A DNA stretch of 64,000 nucleotides from IMGVR_UViG_3300044796_000662:186001-250000, one strand, 5' to 3'; positions 26,805 through 63,666 are shown, counted from the stretch's first letter. A program made the numbers and translations. Notes: generated by a model not told the origin, from the letters alone.

Positions 26805-27059
26805 CTACGCGCTACCCGTGATCGCGAGGCTGAAGATCATCCCGTCCTTGACCCGCACACTTTCGCTCGGAGCGAGGCAGCCATCCTGCTTGGGGCAGTG
26901 CCCGTGCTGGTAGACAATCGTGATGACCGCCCCAGGCAGCTTGGACCAGGCGATCATCTTCGGTCTGTCCTCGTAGGCGATCTCCACGACGTCCGCGTAG
27001 GACAACTCGGCAGCCGCGGTCTCCACCTTGCGCGTGTTCACAGTGATGATCGCCATCAT
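26805..27059 (-). CDS. Ubiquitin-like (multiubiquitin-domain, beta-grasp) protein
   Basis: IITVNTRKVE....LSYADVVEIAY...ITIVY..G.....G.L.P.ESVRVKDGMIFSL..T matches the bacterial multiubiquitin-domain pattern. Confidence 0.75.
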   Translation of the reverse strand: MMAIITVNTRKVETAAAELSYADVVEIAYEDRPKMIAWSKLPGAVITIVYQHGHCPKQDGCLAPSESVRVKDGMIFSLAITGSA

Positions 27060-28018
27060 CCGGACCCTCCCACAAAAGCCTTCGGGCGACCCACTGTGCG
27101 TGGATGCTCGATGCCGAACTCCTTGAGATAGCGGCTGACGGTGTTGTATCCGACGTTCAAACGTCGCCCGATCTCCCGAAGAGGCACTCCTTCGGTTGCT
27201 AGCTCTTGGAGTGCCTCTCTGGTGAGGGTCTTCCGGACCTGGTAATGCGGCCCCTGGAAGCCAAACGTCAACTTCTTAGACGTCATGCACTCCGGCATGT
27301 GCGGCTTGACAAGGGAGATGAAGAGGTGGGCCTGCTCCTCCCCGTCGAAAATGAAGTCGCCAGTAGTCTCTGTGTGCCACTCCCACCTGGGATACAGGCT
27401 GAACTTCGCGAAGATGTCGAACGCGATCTGACGGCTCTCAGGAGACAAGCCAAACGTGATGCGAGGCCACCAGCCGATGGACCCATCGTCCATGTACCAG
27501 ATAGCCAGGGCGAACGCGTCCACGTACTGGATGACCTCAGGGCGGAGTCTCTTCACGGTGCTAGTGCCGTAGAACAGATCGAACCACTGGTTGAGGAGCC
27601 GATGAGCAGCCGTCTCGAAACGCCACCCCTGAAAGTCCTTCCCCTTGAGAGTCCAGGTGACCGACTTCACTCCAGACTTCACCCAGGTACCCCACTCGGA
27701 GACCTTCCACTGAAGGTACTCCTTCTGATCGTTGCCATGGTTTTCGCGGAAACGGGTCGAGTGCGTCAGTCGTTGTAGACTACCATCGCCCAACATCGAG
27801 CCCACGAGAAACGATCGAAGGCGGCCTTCAATGGGTACCACCTCATGACGCTCGGTTCTCTGGACCGTCTCGATACAGAACCTCTTCCTCCAGGAACGAA
27901 CCCTCTTGAGAGTCACGTCAAGCCCGAGACGATCAACGATCTCGGCGTCAGTCAGTTTCTCTTCTCGATAGAGCCGGTGCAGTTCCTCTGCGGTAACAGG
28001 GCAAGGTATAGGTCGCAT
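27056..28018 (-). mobile_element. Free-standing LAGLIDADG homing endonuclease with terminal HTH domains
   Basis: Motif 1 FLVGSMLGDGSL, motif 2 LAIWYMDDGS; HTH LREIGRRLNVGYNTVSRYL; more AT-rich than flanks. Confidence 0.85.
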
Positions 28019-28133: not shown

Positions 28134-29015
28134 TTAGAAGCGTGTGACAACGAGGCGGGTCAACCCACGTGGGTTGAAGGCACCGATGCCCACATTTTCA
28201 AAGCACGAGAAGCCGATGGTGCGGGCCTTGGGGTCGTCGGCGCTGAGAACCGTCAGCTCCGTACGGACGGGGAAGCGTCCGAAGTTTTCCGGCTCGGCGC
28301 ACACGTAGACGAAGCCCACGGGCACGAGGCGGGAGATGATGATCTGAGCGCCCCAGAGGACCGCTTGCAGACCCGTCTTGAGCAGCGTCGCCTGGCTCTC
28401 GATGTCCAGGATGTCGCGGCCGAACTTGCGGATGTCCGCGTAGTCAACCGCGTTCATGTAGATACGGGCAACCCGGAGGTCGTTCCGCTCCACCTCTGCG
28501 AACGCGTCAGCGAGGACGCTCGGGCTGATCGGAGCAACCACCGACACGTCGGGGTTGGTCTGACCGGGGAGGGTGTCGAAGCCCGAGACAGCGATGCTGT
28601 CCAGAACCGCGAACACGCGCTCGTCCTCGGCGGCCTGAATCTGCGCCTTCGCGAGATCCTGGGCGCGCTCGATCAGGTCGAAGCGACGCTCCTTGATCTG
28701 CGTGAGCGGGATTTCCGGGTTCGAGGCGACCTCGAACAGCGGGAAGATCACGCGGCGCGGCTTCTGGATCGCGAGGATGTTCTCGCCTTCCTCGCCGACG
28801 ACGAAGGCCGTGACTTCCGGGTCCTTGTCGTAGATGGGGAGAGCGCCGTCAGGAAGCTGCTCGACCAGGAAGGTCTTGCGGCCGACTGCGGTGTAGTCGC
28901 GACGCAGCCGAAGCGGCTGGATCATCGACGCGGCCAGCTTGGAGCGACCGGCAGCGGTCTTGATGTACTCCGAGATGATCGCCTGCTTGGTCTCGTTGGA
29001 AACGGTGGGCATCAT
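28134..29015 (-). CDS. Major capsid protein (HK97 fold)
   Basis: E-loop LPIYDKDPEVTAFVVGEEGE, FDLIERAQDLAKAQIQAAEDERVF helix, LWGAQIIISRLVP, FENVGIG..NPRG; follows protease-scaffold-decoration genes; strong terminator; highly biased codons. Confidence 0.88.
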   Translation of the reverse strand: MMPTVSNETKQAIISEYIKTAAGRSKLAASMIQPLRLRRDYTAVGRKTFLVEQLPDGALPIYDKDPEVTAFVVGEEGENILAIQKPRRVIFPLFEVASNPEIPLTQIKERRFDLIERAQDLAKAQIQAAEDERVFAVLDSIAVSGFDTLPGQTNPDVSVVAPISPSVLADAFAEVERNDLRVARIYMNAVDYADIRKFGRDILDIESQATLLKTGLQAVLWGAQIIISRLVPVGFVYVCAEPENFGRFPVRTELTVLSADDPKARTIGFSCFENVGIGAFNPRGLTRLVVTRF

Positions 29016-51530: not shown

Positions 51531-51749
51531 CTAGTTGGGCCGGGTCGGAAAGACCTGTTTGGCCACAAAACGCGACAAACCGTCGAGGCGATGCATCGCC
51601 CGAAAAAGCCGGTGACGCACGCGACCCTGCGTCAGCCCCAGGGCGGCGGCTGCCGCCTTGATGGGGTAGGGCTCGTTCCGACTTCTCATCTCATCCAGGG
51701 TCCGAAGGATCTGGACGTCCATGTCGTCGATGATGTCAGAGGACTTCAT
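51531..51749 (-). CDS. Small HTH protein (copy of second HTH of upstream gene)
   Basis: Start MKSSD 51749; DVQIL...AAALGLTQGRVRHRLFRA. Confidence 0.7.
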   Translation of the reverse strand: MKSSDIIDDMDVQILRTLDEMRSRNEPYPIKAAAAALGLTQGRVRHRLFRAMHRLDGLSRFVAKQVFPTRPN

Positions 51750-52371
51750 CACCGCCACGATTGGCCCACTGGGGGAGTTTGACCTCGCGGAGGATGTTGA
51801 AGCGCTTCGAGCTGATCGCGTTGAAGACCTTGTGGTACGGGATGAACTTCCCATCCTTGGCGGCGGCGTCCTTGAGGGTCTTGACCGCCTTGAAGAAGCG
51901 GTGTCTCACGCGCCCCTGTGTGAGCCCCAGGCGGCTGGCCACCTCACTCTGGCAGGTCGTCTGCCACATGCCGATGAGGATGTCCACGTCGATGTCCTTG
52001 AAGACTTCGGGCAGATCGCGCCGCAAGTCCTCTTCGGTCACGGGCGGGATGCTGAGCAGGAACTTGATGCGCTGCAAGCCTCGATCGAGTCGATAGCTGA
52101 TCGCAGCCTGCGTCACCCCGAAGATCTCGGCGATGTCCGCCTGACGCTTCTTCTGGATGTAGTAGAGCTGGATGAGATCCGCCTCCCTTTGGGGGATGCG
52201 ATTGAGCAGAGGCATGATGCGGTCTTCGTAGTCCCCGTCTTGGAGGATCTTCTCGACCGTATCGTCCTCGGGCTCTTGTACCGGCTCTTCGTCGCTGTAG
52301 GGATCGTCGTTGGTGGCAAAGCGGTTGGCGAGTTCGGACGGGTCAACCGGAATCACGTAGCCGATGGTCAT
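51736..52371 (-). CDS. Tandem sigma70 region-4-like HTH protein
   Basis: LNRIPQREADLIQLYY....QADIAEIFGVTQAAISYRLDRG and QSEVASRLGLTQGRVRHR; ATG 52371 with GAGGGA SD. Confidence 0.8.
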   Translation of the reverse strand: MTIGYVIPVDPSELANRFATNDDPYSDEEPVQEPEDDTVEKILQDGDYEDRIMPLLNRIPQREADLIQLYYIQKKRQADIAEIFGVTQAAISYRLDRGLQRIKFLLSIPPVTEEDLRRDLPEVFKDIDVDILIGMWQTTCQSEVASRLGLTQGRVRHRFFKAVKTLKDAAAKDGKFIPYHKVFNAISSKRFNILREVKLPQWANRGGDEVL

Positions 52372-52408
52372 GTGGGTTCCCTCACGCGCGGGCTGCGCGG
52401 TTGCGGCT

Positions 52409-54385
52409 TCACCGAGCGCGTTCGTTGAAGAACACGGCCAGGATAGGCTCGGCCTGTACATCCACATCTGTGAGTCGCTCAGCGGCGACCTTCTGATCTG
52501 GGTTTGGCACGACCTCCGTGAGGGGAACGTCCCGGAGGGTCATGATGTCGAGGTTCAAACGAACCTGTGCTTCAGCGTCCCGGAGGCACTGATAGCGGAG
52601 CTTAGTCAAGCCTGCCAGATTCGAGGCGTAGATGCCATCTATGGTTCCGTAGAGCTGGACCAACCCCAGAAGCACCTTCTGTGGAACGGTCGGAACCCCA
52701 GGCAGGTTGTCTGACGAATCCCCAAGCAGTGCGCGAAGAGTCACGATCTGTGACGGCCCCACACCCCACTCCTGCGTCAGTGCGTCGATGTCGTACAGCA
52801 CTTCCTTTCGCTTACCTTGTGCCGGCGTCAGTAGACGGTCGGTCTCTGTCACGAGCTGTAGAAGGTCACGGTCCGAGGAGAGGACCACGTTGTTCTGGCC
52901 CTTCAAGGTGCCACGCAGGAGGCTTGCGATGGCATCGTCGGCCTCCTCCCCCTCGTTGTAGAGCTGTGTAACCCCCAGAATCGGGAGCACCTCGCGCAGC
53001 CAGGCCACCTGGTCCCAGCGCACGCCCCCTGTCTCTTCTTCCGCGAAGCCGCTCGAACGGTTGGCCTTGTAATCGGCGTACTTGGCCTTGCGGGTTCGAT
53101 TCGAGCCATCCCAGACCACGTAGATGCTGGCCCCTGGGAACCGCTTGAGCAGGCTTGCGGTCGAGCGCAGAAAGCCGAAGAGCACGCCCGTGTGCCTCTG
53201 TTGCGTGTCCCGCATGTCCGACATGCCGGGCGCGTAGAAGCAGCGATAGGCGAGGTTGAAACCGTCGATGATGACGTTCTGGACTTCCACGCTGGTCTCC
53301 TCAATCTCGCGCTCGATCTCCGAGACGTCGTCTGACAGGTTGTCCAGGCTCTCTTGCAAGTCCTGCAACGTGAGCCACTTGAAGTACCGTCCCTCGATCT
53401 CCGAGAAGGGCGTCTCGACGAGGCTCTCGCGGACAAGGGGTACGAGACCGTCCCAACGCTGTGTGAGACCATCAAGCAGGATCGCTCGGTCCCCTTGCTC
53501 CTTGAGCTTGCTCGCATCGAGGGGGATGTAGAACGACCGAACGAGGTTGGAGCGATGCTCCAGCCCCTCAGCCCAGTCGTTCAGTTGCGTATAGACGTCG
53601 AGTCTCGGACGTATCCGGGTGATGAGCGTGGGCGCGGTAAGTGCTGTCTGGATGGTCGTGAAACTCTCGACCTTGGACACCCAAGACTGGAACTGGAGAT
53701 ACTCCTGGTAGTGCTTGTTCAGGCGCGCGAAGCCGACGAGCTTTGGGGCCTTGAGCAGATCGTAGAAGTCGTTGAACCAGTCACGGACGCCTGCGAAGCG
53801 GTCCATGGCCGGAGCCTTGGGCGCCTTGGAGACGAGCCGGAGGAAGCTCCGGGGCAGCGTGATGATCGAGTCCTTGGAGCGTAGAAGAACCCGTACCTGG
53901 ACCTTGTCCTCTTCGGGAATCTCCTCGATGACCTTCGCCTGGATCTGGCGATAGGCCCCTGAGGTGATGAGAACCGTGTCGTCGATACCGATCCCCTGGT
54001 CGGTCTCGACATGGATCTGCCGCTTCATCTTGTCGATGGCGGAGTTCTCGACGAAGGCTAGCTGCCGGACAGGACGCCCCCCGTTCTCGGGTCGGACGAT
54101 CTTCGTGAGCACCTTCTGGACGTACTTGGAGTTGTCCAGTCTGTTGTAAAGCGTATCGGGGTGCTTGTGCCGAATGAACGCGTAGCCATCGACGAGGTAG
54201 TGCACTACCCGGTCCTCACCGATCTGCGTGACCGCAGCCGGAATGAACACTTCGGCGCCCTTCACTGCGTAGGTGATGGAACGCCGGACGATGTCCGGGT
54301 CCTCCCCTTCGGCCTTGGAACTCAGTTCCAAGATGACCCACTGGTTGGGATCGCTCGTCACAACGACTACGCCCTCCTGGGCCAT
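52409..54385 (-). CDS. NusG (NGN+KOW) fused to Pol I-type 5'-3' exonuclease/flap endonuclease
   Basis: N-term WVIL...EVFIP...LVDGYAFI...V.ITSGAY....AKV.E; C-term IIDGFNLAYR, VVWDG, YKANR, EADD, SSDRDLLQL, GDSSDNLPGV. Confidence 0.85.
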   Translation of the reverse strand: MAQEGVVVVTSDPNQWVILELSSKAEGEDPDIVRRSITYAVKGAEVFIPAAVTQIGEDRVVHYLVDGYAFIRHKHPDTLYNRLDNSKYVQKVLTKIVRPENGGRPVRQLAFVENSAIDKMKRQIHVETDQGIGIDDTVLITSGAYRQIQAKVIEEIPEEDKVQVRVLLRSKDSIITLPRSFLRLVSKAPKAPAMDRFAGVRDWFNDFYDLLKAPKLVGFARLNKHYQEYLQFQSWVSKVESFTTIQTALTAPTLITRIRPRLDVYTQLNDWAEGLEHRSNLVRSFYIPLDASKLKEQGDRAILLDGLTQRWDGLVPLVRESLVETPFSEIEGRYFKWLTLQDLQESLDNLSDDVSEIEREIEETSVEVQNVIIDGFNLAYRCFYAPGMSDMRDTQQRHTGVLFGFLRSTASLLKRFPGASIYVVWDGSNRTRKAKYADYKANRSSGFAEEETGGVRWDQVAWLREVLPILGVTQLYNEGEEADDAIASLLRGTLKGQNNVVLSSDRDLLQLVTETDRLLTPAQGKRKEVLYDIDALTQEWGVGPSQIVTLRALLGDSSDNLPGVPTVPQKVLLGLVQLYGTIDGIYASNLAGLTKLRYQCLRDAEAQVRLNLDIMTLRDVPLTEVVPNPDQKVAAERLTDVDVQAEPILAVFFNERAR

Positions 54386-55860
54386 GTGCGCTCGAATTCC
54401 CGTCGCCAGTCTTCCGGCGTCAGAATGCGATTCATCTCGTCCTCTGTTCCTTGATGGAAGGACAGCGGAACGTCAATGTTGCCTGGGTTGGAACGGCTCC
54501 GAGGCCGCCCCAACGGCACAGCCTTGTGGTCTTCGGAGGTGAGAGCGTAAGGGTCCCCTGAGCCGATAGCTCCGATGCCGTCCGCCCGCATCTTGCCGTT
54601 GCCCCCATTGGTTGCCGCGTGGACGATGGGGACTTGGGGTGCCGGAGAGGGGGAGGGTGGCGCCGCCGTTGTCACGGGAGACGGTGCAGACACCGGCTGT
54701 GACACCGCAGGAGGCGTTGAGGGGGTAGCTTGAACCGCTGCGGTCTGAACAGGGACCGAAGCGACGGCCATGGGTGCAGACACGGACAGCACAAGAGGCT
54801 GCGCCCCCATCTGTTGGGGAACGGCGCCGTTGGACTGCGCGAGGCTCACGATGTCGCAGACAAGGCTGATCCGCGACACTGCCCGATGCCGAAGGAAGTA
54901 TTCGGCCAGCTTGGTGCACCCCGTGGTGAACCGCTGGTAGACCTGCTCGGCCAGTTGCCGGTCCACGTACACGAAGTCGGCCGCCATGTTGTTGGCAAGC
55001 CGGAACGAGTTCATGGCCGCCTCGGCAAGACCTGCGGCCACCTGGTCAGCGGGCACTCGCTCGCATGCCTGGTCCACGAGTTCGAGAGCCTGCTTGGGGT
55101 TCCCGAGCGCAAGGAGGATCTGGTAGTACGTCGAGACGACACTGAGGTGTAGGTACTCTCGAACAGACTCGACCGTGACCGACCCCATCTGGGCGATCAT
55201 CTCCAGCTTGTTCAAGATGTCCCGGACGTGCCCGCCCGAGTGATCGATCACGATCAACACCGCGTCGTCTTGGTACTCGACCTTCTCGGTTTCGAGCACC
55301 ATTCGCATCCGCCCGAGCACGTCCTCACGAGTGACCTTACGGATCGGGTACGTCTCGCAGCGGCTCTGGATGGTCCCGCGGATGTTCTGAGGCTCGGTCG
55401 TACAGAAGATACCGAGGAGCTTCTTCTCCTCGATGGGCTTGAGCAGGACGTCCTGAGCCTCCTTGCTCATCCGGTGCGCCTCGTCGAAGAGGTAGATGCG
55501 GATGGGCGCCCCCATGGGCGGCATGTACGGGAGGTCTTCGAGCAGGTCACGGACGTTGGCAACGCCGCCGTTACTAGCCGCGTCGCGCTCCGTGAAGGCA
55601 CTGGGCTGGTCCTCCAGAATCGCGAGGCACTGCTCGCAGACGTTGCAGGGCTCCCACTCCTCACGGTTCAAGTTCTGACAGAGGGCCGCCCTCGCCAGCA
55701 CACGGGCAAGGGTGGTCTTGCCCTGCCCGTGACCGCCCGCGAAGATGTAGGACGTGTTCAGGATGGTCCCGTTCCTCAAGCGAGCCTTGATGAGCTGGAC
55801 GGATCCCTCCTGACCGAGCACCTCGGAGAACTTGCGCGGGCGGTACTTAGTGTCCCACAT
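54367..55860 (-). CDS. dnaX: DNA polymerase III gamma/tau-like clamp loader subunit
   Basis: KYRPRKFSEVLGQ, GGHGQGKTT, C..PCNVCEQC Zn module, DEAH, SRC, Pro-rich C-terminal linker. Confidence 0.92.
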   Translation of the reverse strand: MWDTKYRPRKFSEVLGQEGSVQLIKARLRNGTILNTSYIFAGGHGQGKTTLARVLARAALCQNLNREEWEPCNVCEQCLAILEDQPSAFTERDAASNGGVANVRDLLEDLPYMPPMGAPIRIYLFDEAHRMSKEAQDVLLKPIEEKKLLGIFCTTEPQNIRGTIQSRCETYPIRKVTREDVLGRMRMVLETEKVEYQDDAVLIVIDHSGGHVRDILNKLEMIAQMGSVTVESVREYLHLSVVSTYYQILLALGNPKQALELVDQACERVPADQVAAGLAEAAMNSFRLANNMAADFVYVDRQLAEQVYQRFTTGCTKLAEYFLRHRAVSRISLVCDIVSLAQSNGAVPQQMGAQPLVLSVSAPMAVASVPVQTAAVQATPSTPPAVSQPVSAPSPVTTAAPPSPSPAPQVPIVHAATNGGNGKMRADGIGAIGSGDPYALTSEDHKAVPLGRPRSRSNPGNIDVPLSFHQGTEDEMNRILTPEDWRREFERTWPRRA

Positions 55861-55879
55861 GGTGCTTGGTTCGTGTCAG

Positions 55880-55905
55880 CTACACCGTTCAGGAATCCTG
55901 AACGG
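55880..55905 (-). promoter_or_regulatory. CGGTGTAG motif overlapped by a 21-bp palindrome
   Basis: Motif 55880-55887; CCGTTCAGGA-A-TCCTGAACGG at 55885-55905. Confidence 0.55.
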
Positions 55906-56380
55906 TTTCCTCTGCGATGCTGGCGCTGACGACGTCGTTGACCAAGTCCTCGATCTTGACGTCCTTGGCGATCGAAACGAAGCCGTTCAGCTCCTCATTC
56001 CAGGCGCCGTGACGCTGAAGGATGGACGAGAACTCCTGGACGTCCGGCTTGCGGATCTTCCAGGACATCTCCCCCGACTTCTCGTCTTCCTCGCCGTAGC
56101 AGCGCTCCAGGAGGTGGTCGATGAGAGCCGTCCTCTGTTCGACGCCCAGCTCGTTGAACTCGTCCAGAGCGACTTCGATCAGGAAGTCCACCTCCAGAAG
56201 GAACTGAAGAACGCCAGAGATCTTGCGGACCTTGCCCAGGACAGGGCGACCGGACTCCTTGGAGGCCGTGTCCACGTAGATGTACTTGACGCGGGCCGTG
56301 GCCAGCTCGGGGTGGTAGCTCGGGATGAGCTTCAACGCGATCTGCTCCACCGTGTCGGCAATTCCGTAAACCTTAGCCAT
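55889..56380 (-). CDS. Phage metallopeptidase-like protein (HExxH degenerate)
   Basis: VLGKVRK...DFLIEV....F..L..EQR.ALIDHLLER...IRKPDVQEF..I..RHG.W. Confidence 0.75.
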   Translation of the reverse strand: MAKVYGIADTVEQIALKLIPSYHPELATARVKYIYVDTASKESGRPVLGKVRKISGVLQFLLEVDFLIEVALDEFNELGVEQRTALIDHLLERCYGEEDEKSGEMSWKIRKPDVQEFSSILQRHGAWNEELNGFVSIAKDVKIEDLVNDVVSASIAEETVQDS

Positions 56381-57101
56381 CGTTTCTCTCCATCAGGCGG
56401 TTGAAGGGCTCTACACCCTCCCGAATGAATTTGCCGAGATACTCTTCACCCCGAAGCTCCCAGAGGTCCCCTGGGTCCTTCGTCATCTTGCCGTTGGGCA
56501 TGGGCAACTTGGCCCAACGGATGCCCTCGATCTGGTACTCACGCCCATGCTCCTTGTAGAAGCTGGCGGCGGCCTTTTGGCCAGTGGTGTCATTATCATA
56601 CGCAAGCACGATACGCTTGCATGTTCTCCGCAGCGTGGCGAGAAAGGGCCCAACGACACGTGCGGTCATGGTCGCGACCACCGCTGGGGAATGCCTCTGG
56701 ACCGGGAACAGGTCGTTGGCCCCCTCAACGAGGGTCACCGATTCCGTGGCCCAAATGTGCGGCATCGCCTGCCCGAGTCCGAAGAGGATCGGCTCCCCGG
56801 TATCGAGCATGAAGTTCGAGTTGAACTTGCGGCTCCTGTCCACGGGGCGGAACTGCACCCCACGGATCTCCCCGAGCGCGTTGGTCAACGGATAGACGAA
56901 CACGTCGTCAAGAACCGTCCCCGAACCGTACTGTTTGAGGAACTTCGGATCGTAGTCCAACGGCGGAAGCGTCCGCTTCAAGTAGCCGATGTTGTACTCC
57001 CTGATCTGCTCGTCGGAACAGCCGCGGACGTTGAGCGCCTCGACCACCCGCTCTGTCATGAGCGAGCGGGCGTACTCGACTAGTTGATCAAGCCACGCCA
57101 T
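56373..57101 (-). CDS. dnaG: DnaG-type DNA primase catalytic core (TOPRIM), no Zn-binding domain
   Basis: LFGL, LVEGANDL, LAYDNDTTGQKA, KDPGD. Confidence 0.85.
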   Translation of the reverse strand: MAWLDQLVEYARSLMTERVVEALNVRGCSDEQIREYNIGYLKRTLPPLDYDPKFLKQYGSGTVLDDVFVYPLTNALGEIRGVQFRPVDRSRKFNSNFMLDTGEPILFGLGQAMPHIWATESVTLVEGANDLFPVQRHSPAVVATMTARVVGPFLATLRRTCKRIVLAYDNDTTGQKAAASFYKEHGREYQIEGIRWAKLPMPNGKMTKDPGDLWELRGEEYLGKFIREGVEPFNRLMERNDG

Positions 57102-57723
57102 CGCCGACCACCATGATTGCCCGATCCGCCCTCTGGATCATGAGCCCCAGGTAATCGCCCACGCGCGTATACAGGCCCGCGAACTCCGGGTGTGTCGAGA
57201 CCAACGCTGCCCCGGGGGGGAGGTCGGCCGTCATCACCTGCATGTCGTCCACGGTTGCCACGTATCCTTGCGCCTTCATCATCTGGGAGGCCCACTTGGG
57301 ATCGAAGTCTGGACCGCAGATGTCCGGGAGAACGCTCTCTGGGACAACCAGAAGAGCCGGTTCAAGACCCAACCCTCGTAGGCGGGTGACCGCCTCTGTT
57401 ACGCTGTTACACCGATTGCCCCACTGATTTTTCAGGGAAAAATCGAGCAGTGACATGTACAGCTCGATGACGAGCTGCTCCTCTTCGTCCACTGGAACCT
57501 CGGAGAAACCGTACCGAGCCGTCCCGCGAACAGAGCTTCGTCGCGTCTGTACGAACTGACGCGCTGCGTTCGTGGACAGAAGCGGCTCTACGTCATCGGG
57601 GACCTCAAGCTCATTCAGTGCCGGGCGCGAGGAGACCCCCGACCGGATGGAGGCTTGAAGTTTCTCCGGCATCCGCATGTTGCGCCGCTCGGGCACGAAG
57701 AGGCGCCCCAACACCGTTGCCAC
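57088..57723 (-). CDS. Hypothetical protein; C-terminal half resembles part of the capsid (HK97) fold
   Basis: By-eye alignment to this window's MCP (see findings). Confidence 0.55.
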   Translation of the reverse strand: MATVLGRLFVPERRNMRMPEKLQASIRSGVSSRPALNELEVPDDVEPLLSTNAARQFVQTRRSSVRGTARYGFSEVPVDEEEQLVIELYMSLLDFSLKNQWGNRCNSVTEAVTRLRGLGLEPALLVVPESVLPDICGPDFDPKWASQMMKAQGYVATVDDMQVMTADLPPGAALVSTHPEFAGLYTRVGDYLGLMIQRADRAIMVVGDGVA

Positions 57724-57726
57724 GGG

Positions 57727-58293
57727 TCACTCCTCGACGATGGGCAGCGACGGCTTGGACTGAACAGGCTCCCACGGAGGTAGAAGCTTCTCCGGGTCCT
57801 CCGGCTGGCTCAAGGGTTCGACCTGGATGCGCAGGAGCTTGTACCAGAGGCGCTTCCACCAGGGGATGTCCGGCACCTGCATCTTGTTGATCGCCCATAG
57901 CAACCCGTAGACCTCGGGCATGTTGACCCTGAGCCAGTCCGGATCCTTGAGCTGTTGCGCGAAGTCGTTCCAGATCGTCTTCTTGTTGGCCTTGGGGTTG
58001 AAGTACGGGCAGCGCTGAGCGTCGATGGGCTCCTCGCAAATCGTACCCGGCCAGTCCTCGACGCTTGAGGCGCCGAGCATGCAAAGACCCATCGACGGCG
58101 TTCCAGGGGACGTCCCGATGCGGTTGTAGTTCTCGTTGACCTCGCCCGCGATGCGCTTGCGCACGTCCAGCGGGTGCCGATAGTTGTGCGTACAGAGGTG
58201 CGGGAGCCGGTGCTCCGCGAGCTTCACTCTGGCGGTCAGCTCTTCTACGAGCAGAAACCTGATCCGCGCTTCGATCTCGGTTGCATCTCTCAT
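57727..58293 (-). CDS. Cys-rich hypothetical protein
   Basis: CTHN...C...C...CPYF; ATGA-coupled. Confidence 0.7.
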   Translation of the reverse strand: MRDATEIEARIRFLLVEELTARVKLAEHRLPHLCTHNYRHPLDVRKRIAGEVNENYNRIGTSPGTPSMGLCMLGASSVEDWPGTICEEPIDAQRCPYFNPKANKKTIWNDFAQQLKDPDWLRVNMPEVYGLLWAINKMQVPDIPWWKRLWYKLLRIQVEPLSQPEDPEKLLPPWEPVQSKPSLPIVEE

Positions 58294-58952
58294 TTGGGTC
58301 CTCGGAGCCGTTTCAGGCCCAGTGACCAGGTTGTATCAGAAGATTGCTCTTCGAAGCCCTGGTAGGCAGACTTCGCGTGGTCCAAGAACGCCTGGTTGTG
58401 CGTGACGAGAAGGATCGGGATGTTCGTCGTTTCCGACAACTTCCTGAGGAACTGGCCGGTCTGATCCACGTAGTAGTCACTGACGGCCGACAGAGTCTCA
58501 TCCAGGAACAGGACAGGGAACTTCTTGAGGCGCATGAGCGCCAAGAGCCGCAGCGTCAAAGACGCGATGCTCGACACACCACCGCCCGTTGTTTCTAGCG
58601 GCGGTCCGACGATCTCGATGTCGTTCTGCGTGCGCTTGACGAGCAGGTCGATGGAGACCTTCCCTCGGGACTGACCGACCTCAGCCTGAAAGGAGAGGTC
58701 GATGTCGAAGAAGATGGACTTGAGCCCCTCGGTCACGATGGACTCGATGGCCTTCACCTGGTCCATGACCAGCTTGTCCATGAGCAGGCGAAGAAGCTCC
58801 CCTGTTTTGGAGAGCTTCTCCACCCGCTCGGACAACACCGTGATCTCCCTCGCCGTCTTGTCCCGCTGCTGGACAAGGGAGTCCCTCCGCGTCTGAACAC
58901 GGGTCGCGGAGGTCTTGAGTGCTTCAACCCTGGTCTTCCAGGCGTCGGTCAC
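58290..58952 (-). CDS. sbcC: SbcC/Rad50 C-terminal half
   Basis: GTGA-coupled start 58952; coiled coil, signature-like TGGG, Walker B LFLDE, H-loop LVTH. Confidence 0.85.
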   Translation of the reverse strand: MTDAWKTRVEALKTSATRVQTRRDSLVQQRDKTAREITVLSERVEKLSKTGELLRLLMDKLVMDQVKAIESIVTEGLKSIFFDIDLSFQAEVGQSRGKVSIDLLVKRTQNDIEIVGPPLETTGGGVSSIASLTLRLLALMRLKKFPVLFLDETLSAVSDYYVDQTGQFLRKLSETTNIPILLVTHNQAFLDHAKSAYQGFEEQSSDTTWSLGLKRLRGPK

Positions 58953-60259
58953 TCGTACGACGGCATGAACCGAGTCACCGTGCATGAGATTGCTCCTGCC
59001 GGAACCTGCCCTCCCTCGGGCAGTTCACCGGCCACCGTCTTGCCCTCGGCATCGAGGTAGAACCTGTCGATGGTCCGGAGGTAGGCGCCACCCTTGGGGC
59101 GCTTCTCGCTCGGGTCGATCGGGTAGACCCGAAGCTCGACGGTGCCACCCTCGGCGTCCTTGAACAGCGAGAGGAGCTGCTTGCGGTTGATGAACGGCTC
59201 CAGGGTACGGTCGGGCTCCGCCAGCGACGAGTCCTTGCCGACGCTGATGAACATGCTCTTGATGCCCTTGGCGTTACCCTCGGCCGCCTCCAACTGAAGA
59301 GTGTTGGAGTCCTTGTTCCAGAGGAGCCGCACCTTGTCGTGCTTGTCCCCCAGCTCCTCGCCCATGTAGCCGAGCGCGTCGATCATCTCGGCCTTGGGGA
59401 TCTTGAAGACGAACTTGTCGCCGCCGAGCCCGTAGTACGAGTGCTTGGCGTGCAGCTTCGTGGTGTGCGTCCAGCCGAAGACCCGGCTTTCCGACTCGTC
59501 GCAGACGAAGGTCTTCGTGTCCGTAGACTTGATGACCGCCGTCCCCTCGATCTTGCCGAGGAAGCTGAGAAGCAGACCGAGATGCTCGGCCTTGAGCGCG
59601 AAGCTCTTGCCCTTGAACGCCTCGCAGTCGAAGTAGAACGCCTGCGAACCGTTGGCAGCGTAGAGCACGCCGTCACCCTTCTCGTAGGGCTTGATCATCT
59701 GACCCTTGTTCTTCGGGTCCTCGACCTCCGCGTCCTTGTCGAACATCTGGATGGTCTTGTGCTGATCCTCGGCACGGGGATTGTTCTCCCCGTGGAAGTC
59801 CTTGGACAGACTGAGAGCCTTGCGAAGGACGGCGGCGGGGAACTTGCCGGTCTCCTTGGCGGCCTTCAGCTCCTTGTCGAAGGTAGCCAGCCACTTCGGG
59901 TCGAAGGCGGGGCGGGTGCCGCCGGCCCCACGCCCGGGGTCGTAGCTGACGCTGAACTGGTCGCCATCCCTCTTGGACTCGAAGCTGATCGGGCCCGAGA
60001 AATACTTGAACGCCCCGATCGATTCGTACGGGTAGGCGAAGACGCCCTCACCATCCGCGTCGAAGATGTCCATGCGTGCCCGAGCGACATGGTTCGCGTC
60101 GGCCGAGTACATGTACCCCTCGGTCGAGTTGCGGATGTAGAAGAGGAAGCCCGTGTCCCTCTCCTTGTTGCACGCCCTGGGGACCACCGTCTGAACGGCG
60201 TCGATCGCGGCGTTCAGGTGGGCGGCTTGCACTGAGAACTTGATCATGTTCATCCTCAT
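58949..60259 (-). CDS. dnaN: DNA polymerase III beta sliding clamp-like protein
   Basis: IKFSV....L..AI..V..VVP start, three-domain periodicity (LYAANG, FINRKQLLSL), size and context near DnaX. Confidence 0.65.
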   Translation of the reverse strand: MRMNMIKFSVQAAHLNAAIDAVQTVVPRACNKERDTGFLFYIRNSTEGYMYSADANHVARARMDIFDADGEGVFAYPYESIGAFKYFSGPISFESKRDGDQFSVSYDPGRGAGGTRPAFDPKWLATFDKELKAAKETGKFPAAVLRKALSLSKDFHGENNPRAEDQHKTIQMFDKDAEVEDPKNKGQMIKPYEKGDGVLYAANGSQAFYFDCEAFKGKSFALKAEHLGLLLSFLGKIEGTAVIKSTDTKTFVCDESESRVFGWTHTTKLHAKHSYYGLGGDKFVFKIPKAEMIDALGYMGEELGDKHDKVRLLWNKDSNTLQLEAAEGNAKGIKSMFISVGKDSSLAEPDRTLEPFINRKQLLSLFKDAEGGTVELRVYPIDPSEKRPKGGAYLRTIDRFYLDAEGKTVAGELPEGGQVPAGAISCTVTRFMPSYE

Positions 60260-60528
60260 TTCTTCTCGTAGGCCGAGAAGGCTGACTCGGTCTTCGTCAA
60301 GTCGGACTCGTACTCACCGAGCATCTGTTCGAGTTCCGCTTTGGCCTTGTCCCGCTCCCCCACGAGAGTCTTCGGGTCGTAGCCGGCGGCCTTGATCTCC
60401 TTGATCAGAGCCGCCAGTTCCTCTTTCTTGGCCTGAAGCTGGCCGCCGAACTGGGCCTTTTTGGTAGCCACAGCGTCCGTTCGCTTCTGAAGGTCGTCGA
60501 TCTTCTTCTTGATCTCGTCGGGCGTCAT
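60256..60528 (-). CDS. Small coiled-coil protein (possible middle piece of split Rad50)
   Basis: Helical hairpin with central GYDP turn. Confidence 0.65.
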   Translation of the reverse strand: MTPDEIKKKIDDLQKRTDAVATKKAQFGGQLQAKKEELAALIKEIKAAGYDPKTLVGERDKAKAELEQMLGEYESDLTKTESAFSAYEKK

Positions 60529-60546
60529 GTGTCTTCCTCTGTCGGC

Positions 60547-61434
60547 TTATTCGTCGATAGCGACATCCTCTACACCTGACGCTGGGGAAATCTGAGGACG
60601 ATTTTCAGAGGTCATTACCTGGCCTTCCGGGCACGCGAAGACGAACGGGCAGAAGCCGCAGGCACCCTTCTTCGCCCTGGCGGGGAACGCCTGTGCGGCA
60701 ATCGGCAGCCTCTTTCGCTGTTCGATCTCCTCGATGGTACGTATGACCGTCTCTTGCAGCTCGTCTACGGCGTCCCGCGTGGGGACTGACCAGTCCACAG
60801 CCTCGTCGGGCGGGAAGCGCCAGAAAACGAACGCCACCTGGTCGGGGAGCGACCCTGTCTTGCGGCGGTGAAGCATCGAGTACCAGTGGAGCTGCTCGAT
60901 GTCCACGTACTTGTCCCGGTGCCTTGAGCCCTTACCATCGAGGATGATGAGGTCCCCGAGGGGGTGCAGACGTCGCATCCGGAAGTCACAGCGTCCCCCG
61001 AGCATGTGCCCGCTGATCTCGGAGTCCAGCTTCACCTCTGCGGCCGCATCCGTACCGAGCAGCTTGAACTTGCGGATGATGGCAAGGCTGTTCGGGATCG
61101 CCTCTCGGATCTCCTGTATGACCTGGTCCAGAGAGTGCGGGCCGTTCTTCTTGAGCTTGGGATCCTTCCAGTTGAAGATCCCGCCGCCCTTGATCTCGTT
61201 ACGCATCGTCTCGGCAACGACAGAGGACACCCGACTGAGCATCTCTTTGGCGGGATCGGGGAGCTTCCACATCTTGTCGCGGTAGAAGTGCTCGACGATG
61301 ATGCCGATGCAAGACCCGTAGAGCATGTTCACCCGGTTCTCGGGCGTCGGCACCTTGGTCTTGTTGACGTACGAGTGCCAATACTGCCTGGGGCACTCCC
61401 TGTACTTCTTGAACCCGGAGTAGGAGAGGTACAT
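60547..61434 (-). CDS. PD-(D/E)XK RecB/Cas4-like nuclease with Fe-S cysteines
   Basis: LSYS....Y.ECPRQY, GRCD, IILDGK, QLHWY, CGFCPF...C. Confidence 0.88.
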   Translation of the reverse strand: MYLSYSGFKKYRECPRQYWHSYVNKTKVPTPENRVNMLYGSCIGIIVEHFYRDKMWKLPDPAKEMLSRVSSVVAETMRNEIKGGGIFNWKDPKLKKNGPHSLDQVIQEIREAIPNSLAIIRKFKLLGTDAAAEVKLDSEISGHMLGGRCDFRMRRLHPLGDLIILDGKGSRHRDKYVDIEQLHWYSMLHRRKTGSLPDQVAFVFWRFPPDEAVDWSVPTRDAVDELQETVIRTIEEIEQRKRLPIAAQAFPARAKKGACGFCPFVFACPEGQVMTSENRPQISPASGVEDVAIDE

Positions 61435-62420
61435 TAGCCCACGCCCGTTTCTGCTCTTGCGCGTTCCAGGTAGTCGATGGCGAGCTGCTTGACGTCGGAA
61501 GCGAACGAGAGCCCCTGGATGTTGGCCTCGATGGTCTGCGACACGTCAAAGGACGCCTCGCTCTGCAACCGCTCAATGAACTGGTCGATGTTCTCGTGCT
61601 CGCGCTCTGCGCGTTCCTTGCGTTCGAGGTCGAACACTTCGGACGCCGGCGCGACGGACAGCAACAGAGGAGTAATCTCGGCACGCCCCGGCTCGAAGCC
61701 CAAGAGTGCCACCTTTGGGGATCGCTGAAGGTTCTCGTTGATGAGAGCCCCGCGGCTGACAGCACCGAGATTGACGAACTGCTTGCCCCCGAGCTGAACG
61801 ATCCCCTGATCCTTGTGCCAGTGCCCGAAGCACCACACATCTGGACCGTCCTTCGTGACAAGCTGGTCGTACCGGAAGACAGGCTCGTTGAAGAATTCGC
61901 GCACGTTCGGGGGCGGTTCCTCTCCTGCCAGCGAGTGCACGATGGCCACGAGGAAGTCATCACCCGGCTGCTTCTGAATGGCCCTCAGGTCGTCAGCGGT
62001 ACGGTTCGCACTGTAAGGCACCCCGACCACTCGCACGCGCATCCCGCCGTCCTCGAAGACCGTGCTCCGCAAGTGCCGAAAGACCCCCGTCTCGTAGAGA
62101 ACACCCAGAGGTTGACCGGCCACGCTGTCGAGTCGGTTGTAGGCGATGTCGTGGTTGCCCTCGACGCAATACGTGGGCACCCCATACGTGTTGTGCACGC
62201 TAGCCGTTTCCACAACGATCGCGTGGGGGTTGCGACTGGCAGCCTTGATGTGGAAGTAGTCGCCCCCATCGAGGACGGCCTTGACCTCATGCTCCTTGGA
62301 GAAAGCCCCGATCTGCCGGAGGTTGGACCAGATCTCCGCGGGGTAGTCCGCCTTCCAGGAGGAAGGGCTACGGTCGCAGAGATGGGTGTCTGTCCGGTAG
62401 AGCAGAGAGACGCGCGGCAT
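61434..62420 (-). CDS. sbcD: SbcD/Mre11 metallophosphoesterase nuclease
   Basis: DTH, GGDYFH, GNHD, GHWH, NLGA. Confidence 0.9.
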   Translation of the reverse strand: MPRVSLLYRTDTHLCDRSPSSWKADYPAEIWSNLRQIGAFSKEHEVKAVLDGGDYFHIKAASRNPHAIVVETASVHNTYGVPTYCVEGNHDIAYNRLDSVAGQPLGVLYETGVFRHLRSTVFEDGGMRVRVVGVPYSANRTADDLRAIQKQPGDDFLVAIVHSLAGEEPPPNVREFFNEPVFRYDQLVTKDGPDVWCFGHWHKDQGIVQLGGKQFVNLGAVSRGALINENLQRSPKVALLGFEPGRAEITPLLLSVAPASEVFDLERKERAEREHENIDQFIERLQSEASFDVSQTIEANIQGLSFASDVKQLAIDYLERARAETGVG

Positions 62421-62421
62421 A

Positions 62422-63666
62422 TCAGGCCAGCTTCCTCTCCTCGTGGCTGTGCCCGATCTTGACGGGCTGTGCGCACGAAGGACAGAAAGGCAGGGACTTG
62501 ATCTCTCCTACCAGTACCTTCTCGTCAGCGAGAGTCTTGTCGTAGTTGTTCTCCAGGTTCGAGATGGTCTCTTCGAGCGAGGCCATTCTCGACGCGAACG
62601 ACGAGAGCTGGAGGAGTCGATCCCTGGCCACCTTGAGGCCCGTGGGGTCCGGCGTCGTGACGTTCTCGACCCCCTTGAACTTGACCCACTGATCCTGCAA
62701 GCTCTGGAGCTTGTTCGTCCAGGTCGAGAGCTTCTCGAACTTGTCCGCGGCAGCGACGACAGGAGCGGCGATCGGCGTCGGGATGGTCTCGACACCCATG
62801 AGCGACTTCACAGCCGTCGCGCGATCGATCACATCGGACTGGTAGCGGGAGAGCTTCTCGAACTCACTGCGCTTGGCCAGCACTGCGTCGATGGTGGGGA
62901 CTGGCGTTTCGACAGCCTTCTTCAGGGTATCGACGCGGAAGCCGATCGCTCGCAGTTCCTCGATGTAGGAGTCGAGAGACTCGACTGCCTCCTGAACGAC
63001 GGTGATCTGCCCGAGCTTCTTCTCGACCGCGACGACTCCCGCCACGGCCTCGTCGAGGCCCTCGTACTCGTTGATCTGATGCGTTAGCTCGGTCATGTCC
63101 TTCTCCCGGACCTTCCTTGTGGAGACGGCCTCTTTGCGGTCCTTCTCGACGAACCTCATCGCGACGTTGATGCGGTCAAGATGGGCAACGTCGGAGAACA
63201 CGTCAGCGACAACTCCGCCCGACTGGTCGAGCAAGAAGATGTTGTCGAACTGGTCAGCGATCTGGAGCAGCTTGGCGTTGGGCCCGATCTGCACCATCCC
63301 GAAGTCCTTGGCGAGCTTGGGCCTCTCCAAGAAGTCCGGGGTCCCTCTGTTGGGGACCCCGTAGTCCTGACCGTTGAACGTGTAGCTGTTGCGCTTGTCC
63401 CCCTTCTCCCACTTGAGGTCGAAGCCCTCCGTGCGGAGGTGCACCGAGCAGTAGCATTCGCAGGTCTTGGACCCGCGCAGACGCCTATGACAGGCGACAC
63501 CATGACGGACGAACGAGGTCCCAGTCGCGCCCGTGAGGGCCGCGCGAACGGCCCTCACGATGGCGCTCTTGCCGATGTCGGACTTCCCGACGAGGGCGGT
63601 GAACCCGTCGATGTTGATCGAGACGTGCTCGATCGATTGGAAGTTCCGGACCTCTACGTCGATCAT
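62422..63666 (-). CDS. sbcC: SbcC/Rad50 N-terminal half
   Basis: VRNFQS, Walker A GKSDIGKS, Q-loop, coiled coil ending in CPSC hook. Confidence 0.88.
   Translation of the reverse strand: MIDVEVRNFQSIEHVSINIDGFTALVGKSDIGKSAIVRAVRAALTGATGTSFVRHGVACHRRLRGSKTCECYCSVHLRTEGFDLKWEKGDKRNSYTFNGQDYGVPNRGTPDFLERPKLAKDFGMVQIGPNAKLLQIADQFDNIFLLDQSGGVVADVFSDVAHLDRINVAMRFVEKDRKEAVSTRKVREKDMTELTHQINEYEGLDEAVAGVVAVEKKLGQITVVQEAVESLDSYIEELRAIGFRVDTLKKAVETPVPTIDAVLAKRSEFEKLSRYQSDVIDRATAVKSLMGVETIPTPIAAPVVAAADKFEKLSTWTNKLQSLQDQWVKFKGVENVTTPDPTGLKVARDRLLQLSSFASRMASLEETISNLENNYDKTLADEKVLVGEIKSLPFCPSCAQPVKIGHSHEERKLA

Follow-up and report, generated by a model that had tools for sequence, protein, structure and literature searches.

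HK97-fold proteins are known almost only as shell builders, making up phage and herpesvirus capsids, gene transfer agents, satellite capsids and encapsulins. Classical encapsulin shell proteins (Families 1-3) are cell-encoded proteins of about 260-300 aa or longer that form closed icosahedral shells within enzyme operons and have defined cargo-loading peptides. The Family 4 "A-domain" encapsulins (PF08967/DUF1884; Andreas and Giessen 2021, PMC8346489) are truncated proteins of about 100 aa that consist of the A-domain only, are missed by sequence annotation, and are encoded in thermophilic archaea and Bacteroidetes in tight operons downstream of metabolic enzymes, for which they are proposed to serve as structural partners; one forms a complex with GAPDH. 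Diverged paralogues or homologues of a major capsid protein (MCP) with specialized capsid roles include the T4 vertex protein gp24 and SaPIbov5 Ccm, a capsid-protein homologue that redirects assembly (PMC8569155), both encoded with morphogenesis or satellite packaging genes. The phage-G-type MCPs (phrog_2522) include phage G gp27, Tunturi_5 gp334 and the MCP of the huge soil and peat phage examined here.

The DNA analyzed is a 64,000-nt stretch (IMGVR_UViG_3300044796_000662:186001-250000), referred to as the window, which is coded entirely on the minus strand. This phage and many of its relatives carry a small, unannotated protein with a predicted HK97 fold, here called HK97L, that is encoded within the replication operon rather than with the head genes (Table 1). 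The original prediction, made by eye from the sequence alone, was that this 211-aa protein overlaps the primase gene about 28 kb from the MCP gene and aligns with the MCP in two segments of the same order and similar spacing. This observation is confirmed: the open reading frame is present with a GAGGAG Shine-Dalgarno sequence 7 nt upstream of its start, all four peptide segments are present, and the overlap with the primase and the distance to the MCP gene are as described.

Table 1. Coordinates of HK97L, its sub-regions and associated features within the window.
Position (strand)	Feature	Supporting observations
57088..57723 (-)	HK97L, 211-aa CDS with GTG start; predicted miniature HK97-fold protein	Homologues, selection, model and structural matches as described in the text
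57427..57492 (-)	Codons 78-99; predicted 22-residue helix interpreted as the HK97 spine helix, followed by the conserved W-x-N-R-C loop (residues 101-105)	DSSP of the model; W101, N103, R104 and C105 invariant in the 20-sequence alignment; spine-helix assignment inferred from HK97 topology, not from residue-level superposition
57178..57402 (-)	Codons 108-182; predicted A-domain, containing both segments aligned by eye to the MCP	Profile columns 104-181 aligned to MCP 168-248 by hhalign; secondary structure of the model
57319-57405	First HK97L segment aligned by eye	
57169-57267	Second HK97L segment aligned by eye	
57136..57177 (-)	Codons 183-196; beta-hairpin with motif G-x-Y-T-R-V-G-D, the most conserved element of the family, interpreted as the P-domain hairpin	G183 and R187 invariant in 81 sequences; highest mean conservation, 0.62
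57088..57101 (-)	14-nt overlap of the HK97L stop and the primase ATG (translational coupling)	Read directly from sequence; same overlap measured in related loci L001, L002, L012 and L013 and present in the called genes of L019 and L020
56373..57101 (-)	Toprim (DnaG-type) primase catalytic protein, 242 aa, with no zinc-binding domain of its own	PF13155 Toprim_2, E 3.3e-7; phrog_47 DNA primase, E 5e-15, matching profile positions 138-334 only
57727..58293 (-)	orf188, unannotated protein with four invariant cysteines (C34, C71, C86, C95), always immediately upstream of HK97L; stop 3 nt before the HK97L start	Alignment, synteny and junction sequence; no family hit in any library searched
52409..63666 (-)	Conserved replication/recombination block containing HK97L	Pfam, PHROGs and NCBIfam hits; same order in all loci long enough to show it
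28134..29015 (-)	MCP, 293 aa; inferred distant paralogue of HK97L	phrog_2522 major head protein, E 2.5e-51; weak PF05065 hit; 38% identity to phage G gp27 major head protein, E 4e-60
28431-28517	First MCP segment aligned by eye	
28272-28373	Second MCP segment aligned by eye	

HK97L has no hit in Pfam, PHROGs, NCBIfam, PADLOC or PDB sequences, and PDB sequence searches with profiles of 20 and 81 homologues returned nothing meaningful. Homologues were identified in 20 clusters at 90% identity and 185 clusters at 50% identity, almost all 190-212 aa in length and on contigs of up to 570 kb, however none of 81 diverse members hits any capsid Pfam family, such as PF05065 or PF25209, at E up to 1. 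Against two close relatives, HK97L has a dN/dS of 0.10-0.16, within the 0.04-0.42 range of its neighbours, indicating a constrained, functional gene under purifying selection.

An AlphaFold2 model built on 20 homologues is confident, with a mean pLDDT of 89, a pTM of 0.85 and all five models at 87.5-89. In a Foldseek search of PDB, all 50 rows listed are HK97-fold capsid or encapsulin shell proteins or close relatives, many at probability 0.99-1.00. An independent VIA-align scan of 48,161 representative chains gave 32 chains at Z 8 or more; all 50 rows listed are HK97-type, the best at Z 10.3, with alignments spanning residues 1-209. Several encapsulins are among the top matches (Z 8.1-9.5, including 9.5, 8.8 and 8.7), as are T4 gp24 (Z 8.3) and the procapsid of Ccm (Z 7.5). 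Searches of BFVD, AFDB clusters and the ESM Atlas agree, with TM-scores of 0.60-0.61 by query in the Atlas, while a feature search of the ESM Atlas gave only sub-threshold, irrelevant rows, such as tubulin fragments at 0.79. By its predicted structure, HK97L therefore belongs to the HK97-fold superfamily (Pfam clan CL0373), defined by a long spine helix packed on a P-domain beta-sheet with an alpha/beta A-domain, although sequence-profile membership in a capsid family was not found. The secondary structure is read as a short N-terminal helix, four short strands including a 4+4-residue hairpin at residues 48-60, the spine helix, the A-domain, the conserved hairpin and a final strand, which makes the model a miniature whole HK97 fold and not an isolated A-domain. 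The N-arm, E-loop hairpin and P-domain strands appear much shorter than in lattice-forming MCPs, however this is inferred from the secondary-structure string without superposed coordinates, and residues 11-30 are of low confidence. A model of the window's MCP reached a pLDDT of only 37, as all 23 aligned MCPs are at least 84% identical, and provides no element-by-element comparison.

The interpretation offered with the original prediction, an exapted HK97 A-domain protein acting as a decoy for capsid-sensing defences, an assembly modulator or a ring scaffold for replication proteins, is partly supported. A predicted structure unrelated to the HK97 fold had been named in advance as grounds for refutation, and the model did not refute the idea. 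The capsid fold, the placement in the replication operon and the faint signal to the phage lineage's own MCP are supported, while the restriction to an A-domain is not supported. Of the three proposed functions, the scaffold fits the context best, though without direct evidence, and the decoy and assembly-modulator roles are weakened but not excluded.

The best viral structural match to HK97L is phage G gp27 (E 4.6e-8, TM 0.57 by query), an orthologue of the window's MCP. BLASTP of HK97L against the MCP reproduces the by-eye alignment, but only at E 0.78 for a single pair, so that this match alone is not above chance. Profile-profile comparison by hhalign recovers the same register with a signal that grows as the profiles deepen: 20 homologues against 23 close MCPs gave P 7.4e-4, 81 homologues against the same 23 gave P 2.2e-4, and 81 homologues against a more diverse lineage MCP profile of 29 sequences gave P 7.7e-5 (probability 62%). 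With the 81-sequence profile, P was 4e-4 for the window MCP alone, 5e-4 for the LR745208 MCP and 5e-3 for phage G gp27, compared to 0.16-0.33 for HK97 gp5, lambda E and T7 gp10A and at least 0.15 for reversed-sequence decoys. The signal is absent for the Tunturi_5 MCP of the same lineage (P 0.35), showing how thin it is. The resemblance is therefore weak but real, and specific to this MCP lineage, which favours an old duplication within the lineage. All genomes checked that carry HK97L and are long enough also carry this MCP lineage 24-27 kb downstream on the same strand, including a complete 398-kb genome with terminal repeats. HK97L is 82 residues shorter than the MCP.

The replication/recombination block encodes, in order, a Rad50-like N-terminal half, an Mre11-like nuclease, a PD-(D/E)XK nuclease, a 90-aa coiled-coil protein (orf90), a 436-aa clamp-like protein, an SMC-like C-terminal ATPase half, orf188, HK97L, the Toprim primase, a PF18894 metallopeptidase, a clamp loader and a NusG-like domain fused to a 5′-3′ exonuclease, followed by a sigma-70 region 4 protein. 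In 13 of 13 related loci, including members only about 29-32% identical and contigs of 130-570 kb, HK97L lies between orf188 and the primase, and the full order is kept wherever the contig is long enough. The 14-nt overlap with the primase recurs in most loci, and orf188 and HK97L overlap or nearly abut. Promoter-like and terminator-like sites within the block are no more frequent than in shuffled sequence. Jumbo-phage DnaG-type Toprim proteins are often accompanied by a standalone zinc ribbon (Iyer et al. 2021, PMC7824862), a part that orf188 might play by analogy alone; if orf188 were the primase's missing zinc-binding module, HK97L would lie between the two halves of a split primase. By contrast, the MCP gene lies with protease-like and other head genes, so HK97L lacks the head-module placement of a major capsid protein.

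Across the same pairs of more distant genomes, the MCP is 91-98% identical, HK97L 42-61% and the replication proteins 31-76%, indicating that HK97L diverges at the pace of the replication block and is decoupled from the MCP. Unusually fast evolution of HK97L is not upheld among close relatives, where it is 81-88% identical and the primase 66-73%; at long range it is among the more diverged proteins of the block but not an outlier. Phages that share the MCP lineage but have other replication modules, namely phage G, Tunturi_5 and LR745208, have no detectable HK97L, so it is not essential to primases in general. In LR745208, a 180-aa ORF lies in the same position between an orf188 homologue (E 3e-5) and the primase, however it could not be tied to the family (hhalign P 0.027) and is an orphan with no homologues from which to build a profile.

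Taken together, the best explanation, held tentatively, is that HK97L is an ancient, strongly diverged paralogue of the phage-G-type MCP of this huge-phage lineage that has become a fixed core gene of the replication/recombination operon, translationally coupled between orf188 and the primase, and that probably no longer builds the virion shell. In this view, its most likely role is as a self-associating structural partner, a platform or chaperone-like scaffold, for primosome or recombination proteins made from the same operon. The analysis itself establishes a real and constrained gene, an HK97 fold at the level of a confident model, a conserved placement with translational coupling to the primase and a pace of divergence like that of the replication genes. 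The rest is inference: descent from the lineage's MCP is somewhat more likely than not, a non-virion role linked to replication is about as likely as not, and the scaffold mechanism is doubtful. There is no direct evidence for binding to the primase or orf188 or for self-assembly, and conserved gene order in a conserved core genome does not prove a functional link. A complex prediction of the window's primase, orf188 and HK97L from single sequences left HK97L unfolded (pLDDT 31-34) and is evidence neither for nor against binding. The family median pI is 6.3 and that of the window protein 4.9, with only a mildly basic N-terminal arm, which does not favour a nucleic-acid-binding role. One peat metatranscriptome holds the locus, but as 12.5-kb contigs of flat depth (28.7 over the replication block and 32.6 over the head genes) that may include DNA and carry no timing information.

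The closest precedent is the Family 4 A-domain encapsulins, which HK97L resembles in its truncated fold, its invisibility to sequence annotation and its conserved tight pairing with an enzyme. This is an analogy of arrangement only, as HK97L is phage-encoded, lies upstream of a primase rather than downstream of a metabolic enzyme, appears to keep the spine helix and a P-domain sheet, and has no DUF1884 hit. No paper describing an HK97-fold protein in a phage replication module was found in the incomplete literature that could be searched, so the setting of this apparently reused fold seems not to have been described before. If HK97L works in replication, it would extend what this fold is known to do, give a second example after A-domain encapsulins of a cut-down capsid fold serving an enzyme, and might bear on how very large phage genomes, here of 400-600 kb, organize replication. 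Structure prediction can thus annotate a large family that Pfam, PHROGs and NCBIfam all miss, and a capsid-fold hit in a phage genome is not always the capsid gene.

Of the alternatives, a minor virion protein encoded outside the head module, such as a specialized penton or vertex subunit like T4 gp24, survives best but is unlikely. The full-length HK97 fold, the match to T4 gp24, the single direction of transcription with head genes only 25-28 kb downstream, and the possibility that huge capsids need a dedicated vertex protein are consistent with this role, and virion association cannot be excluded as no member of the clade is cultured; the nearest cultured phage by MCP infects the acidobacterium Tunturiibacter. 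However, divergence to 42-61% identity is unexpected for a tight lattice partner of so conserved an MCP, the gene is fixed between orf188 and the primase in all 13 loci, phage G has no detectable copy although its capsid uses the orthologous MCP, and the interlocking elements are inferred to be short.

It is also possible, though improbable, that HK97L self-assembles into a closed encapsulin-like shell or capsomer-like ring that encloses or concentrates replication or recombination proteins as a phage-encoded nanocompartment. HK97-fold proteins generally self-assemble, encapsulins rank among the best structural matches, the gene shares an operon with enzymes as encapsulin shells do, and a conserved C-terminal short motif in orf188 could, speculatively, be a docking peptide. 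Against this, HK97L has no hit to PF04454 or other encapsulin families, is phage-encoded on contigs of 130-570 kb with phage head genes, has no demonstrated cargo-targeting signal, is shorter than the shell-forming chains among the matches (roughly 230-300 aa), and has interlocking elements that look shortened, again by inference. The boldest form of this idea, unlikely but not excluded, is that a clade of huge phages has turned a copy of its capsid protein into a self-assembling ring or shell that organizes or encloses its primosome and recombination machinery; this would be a virus-encoded, encapsulin-like replication compartment or platform and the first HK97-fold protein with a role in DNA replication.

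An anti-defense role, as a capsid-like decoy or inhibitor made early to blunt host sensors of the MCP, is similarly improbable. Capsid-sensing defences exist, for example CapRel (PMC9712102), the replication genes are probably expressed before the head genes, and HK97L is among the more diverged proteins of the block at long range. However, it is a fixed core gene of invariant position in every relative examined, unlike typical patchy accessory anti-defense genes, is under purifying selection with no sign of an arms race among close relatives, has no PADLOC hit, and shows almost no sequence resemblance to the highly conserved MCP it would have to mimic. Less likely still is modulation of capsid assembly, such as size determination or nucleation, by co-assembly with the MCP as for Ccm; Ccm is among the structural matches and huge capsids need accurate size control, but HK97L lies outside the head module, its tempo is decoupled from the MCP, and it is absent from phage G, which builds a very large capsid with the orthologous MCP. 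A prediction artefact or convergence in an unrelated small alpha/beta replisome protein is very unlikely. The fold rests on a predicted model with moderate TM-scores (0.57-0.61 by query) and sequence methods alone see nothing in Pfam or PDB, but all five models are confident, two independent aligners and five libraries return only HK97-fold proteins at the top, and an independent profile signal specific to the lineage's MCP falls in the matching region.

A possible natural fusion of HK97L with the primase N-terminus was also considered in one related locus, L027, where a 245-aa HK97L precedes a 183-aa Toprim gene. This reading is rejected, as the extra 57 residues are a low-complexity read-through in the frame overlapping the true primase N-terminus, and the primase had been truncated by the gene caller.

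A Rad50/SbcC-like ATPase within the replication and recombination block appears to be split into separate genes (see table). A 414-aa N-terminal half hits the RecN/Rad50 N-terminal head, and a 231-aa C-terminal half matches the SMC C-terminal head; signature-like, Walker B and H-loop motifs were seen in the latter upon inspection by eye, however no Walker A motif was seen. Located between these two halves are genes encoding an Mre11-like nuclease, a PD-(D/E)XK nuclease, a 90-aa coiled-coil protein and a clamp-like protein. This split arrangement is conserved in relatives.

The orf188 product contains four invariant cysteines (C34, C71, C86 and C95), which are conserved even in the distant homologue from LR745208, as well as a conserved C-terminal short motif (E-P-L-x-P...K-L-L-P). 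This protein has no family hit in any library, and it is possible that it functions as a metal-binding partner of the Toprim primase, which lacks a zinc finger, or that it carries a docking peptide. A PF18894 "putative phage metallopeptidase" (E 1e-24) is fixed between the primase and the clamp loader in all relatives, although its role in a replication operon is unexplained. The 5'-3' exonuclease (FEN/RNase H type) carries an N-terminal region that weakly matches a transcription-antiterminator family in the window, with a weak NusG Pfam hit in a relative, and is followed by a protein with sigma-70 region 4, an arrangement that may link replication and transcription control.

Location of additional features. 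Coordinates are those of the window unless another sequence is named.
Feature	Coordinates	Strand
Apparently split Rad50/SbcC-like ATPase arrangement	58290-58985, 60256-60528, 61434-62420, 62422-63666	minus (all)
orf188	57727-58293	minus
PF18894 putative phage metallopeptidase	55889-56380	minus
5'-3' exonuclease and protein with sigma-70 region 4	52409-54385 and 51736-52467	minus (both)
Major capsid protein (MCP)	28134-29015	minus
LAGLIDADG homing endonuclease	27056-28018	minus
ORF of 2773 aa	6907-15228	minus
ORF of 1347 aa	34833-38876	
Second short match to the MCP in G001, a relative of the window's phage	G001:C1:363779-363874	
Extended HK97L frame in the relative L027	L027 5001-5744	
Window within its IMG/VR record	186001-250000	

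The window is part of a 362,937-bp IMG/VR record that is labelled "provirus" and estimated at 76% complete. Identical sequence occurs in peat metagenome and metatranscriptome runs, and relatives occur in soil, lake water and rhizosphere. The "provirus" label looks doubtful for a phage whose relatives reach 398-570 kb, one of them with terminal repeats.

In comparisons of the window with the relatives L029, L030 and L031, the MCP is 91-98% identical between genomes whose replication proteins are only 31-76% identical; the MCP is either under extreme constraint or is exchanged between these phages. Directly downstream of the MCP gene lies a gene encoding a LAGLIDADG homing endonuclease with a C-terminal helix-turn-helix domain, which is probably a mobile element parked beside the highly conserved capsid gene. 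In G001, a second short match to MCP residues 40-71 (E 6.9e-13) lies inside a 209-aa open frame far from the real MCP gene, and may represent an MCP N-terminal fragment or a fusion in this related genome. The structural part of the window also encodes giant proteins of unknown function, namely a single ORF of 2773 aa and another of 1347 aa with no Pfam hit.

In L027, the frame encoding HK97L, the predicted HK97-fold protein that neighbours the primase, lacks its usual stop and reads 57 codons further, across the primase N-terminal coding region in another frame. The gene caller therefore truncated the primase to 183 aa, and the apparent joining of the two genes in this relative is an annotation trap rather than a fusion.
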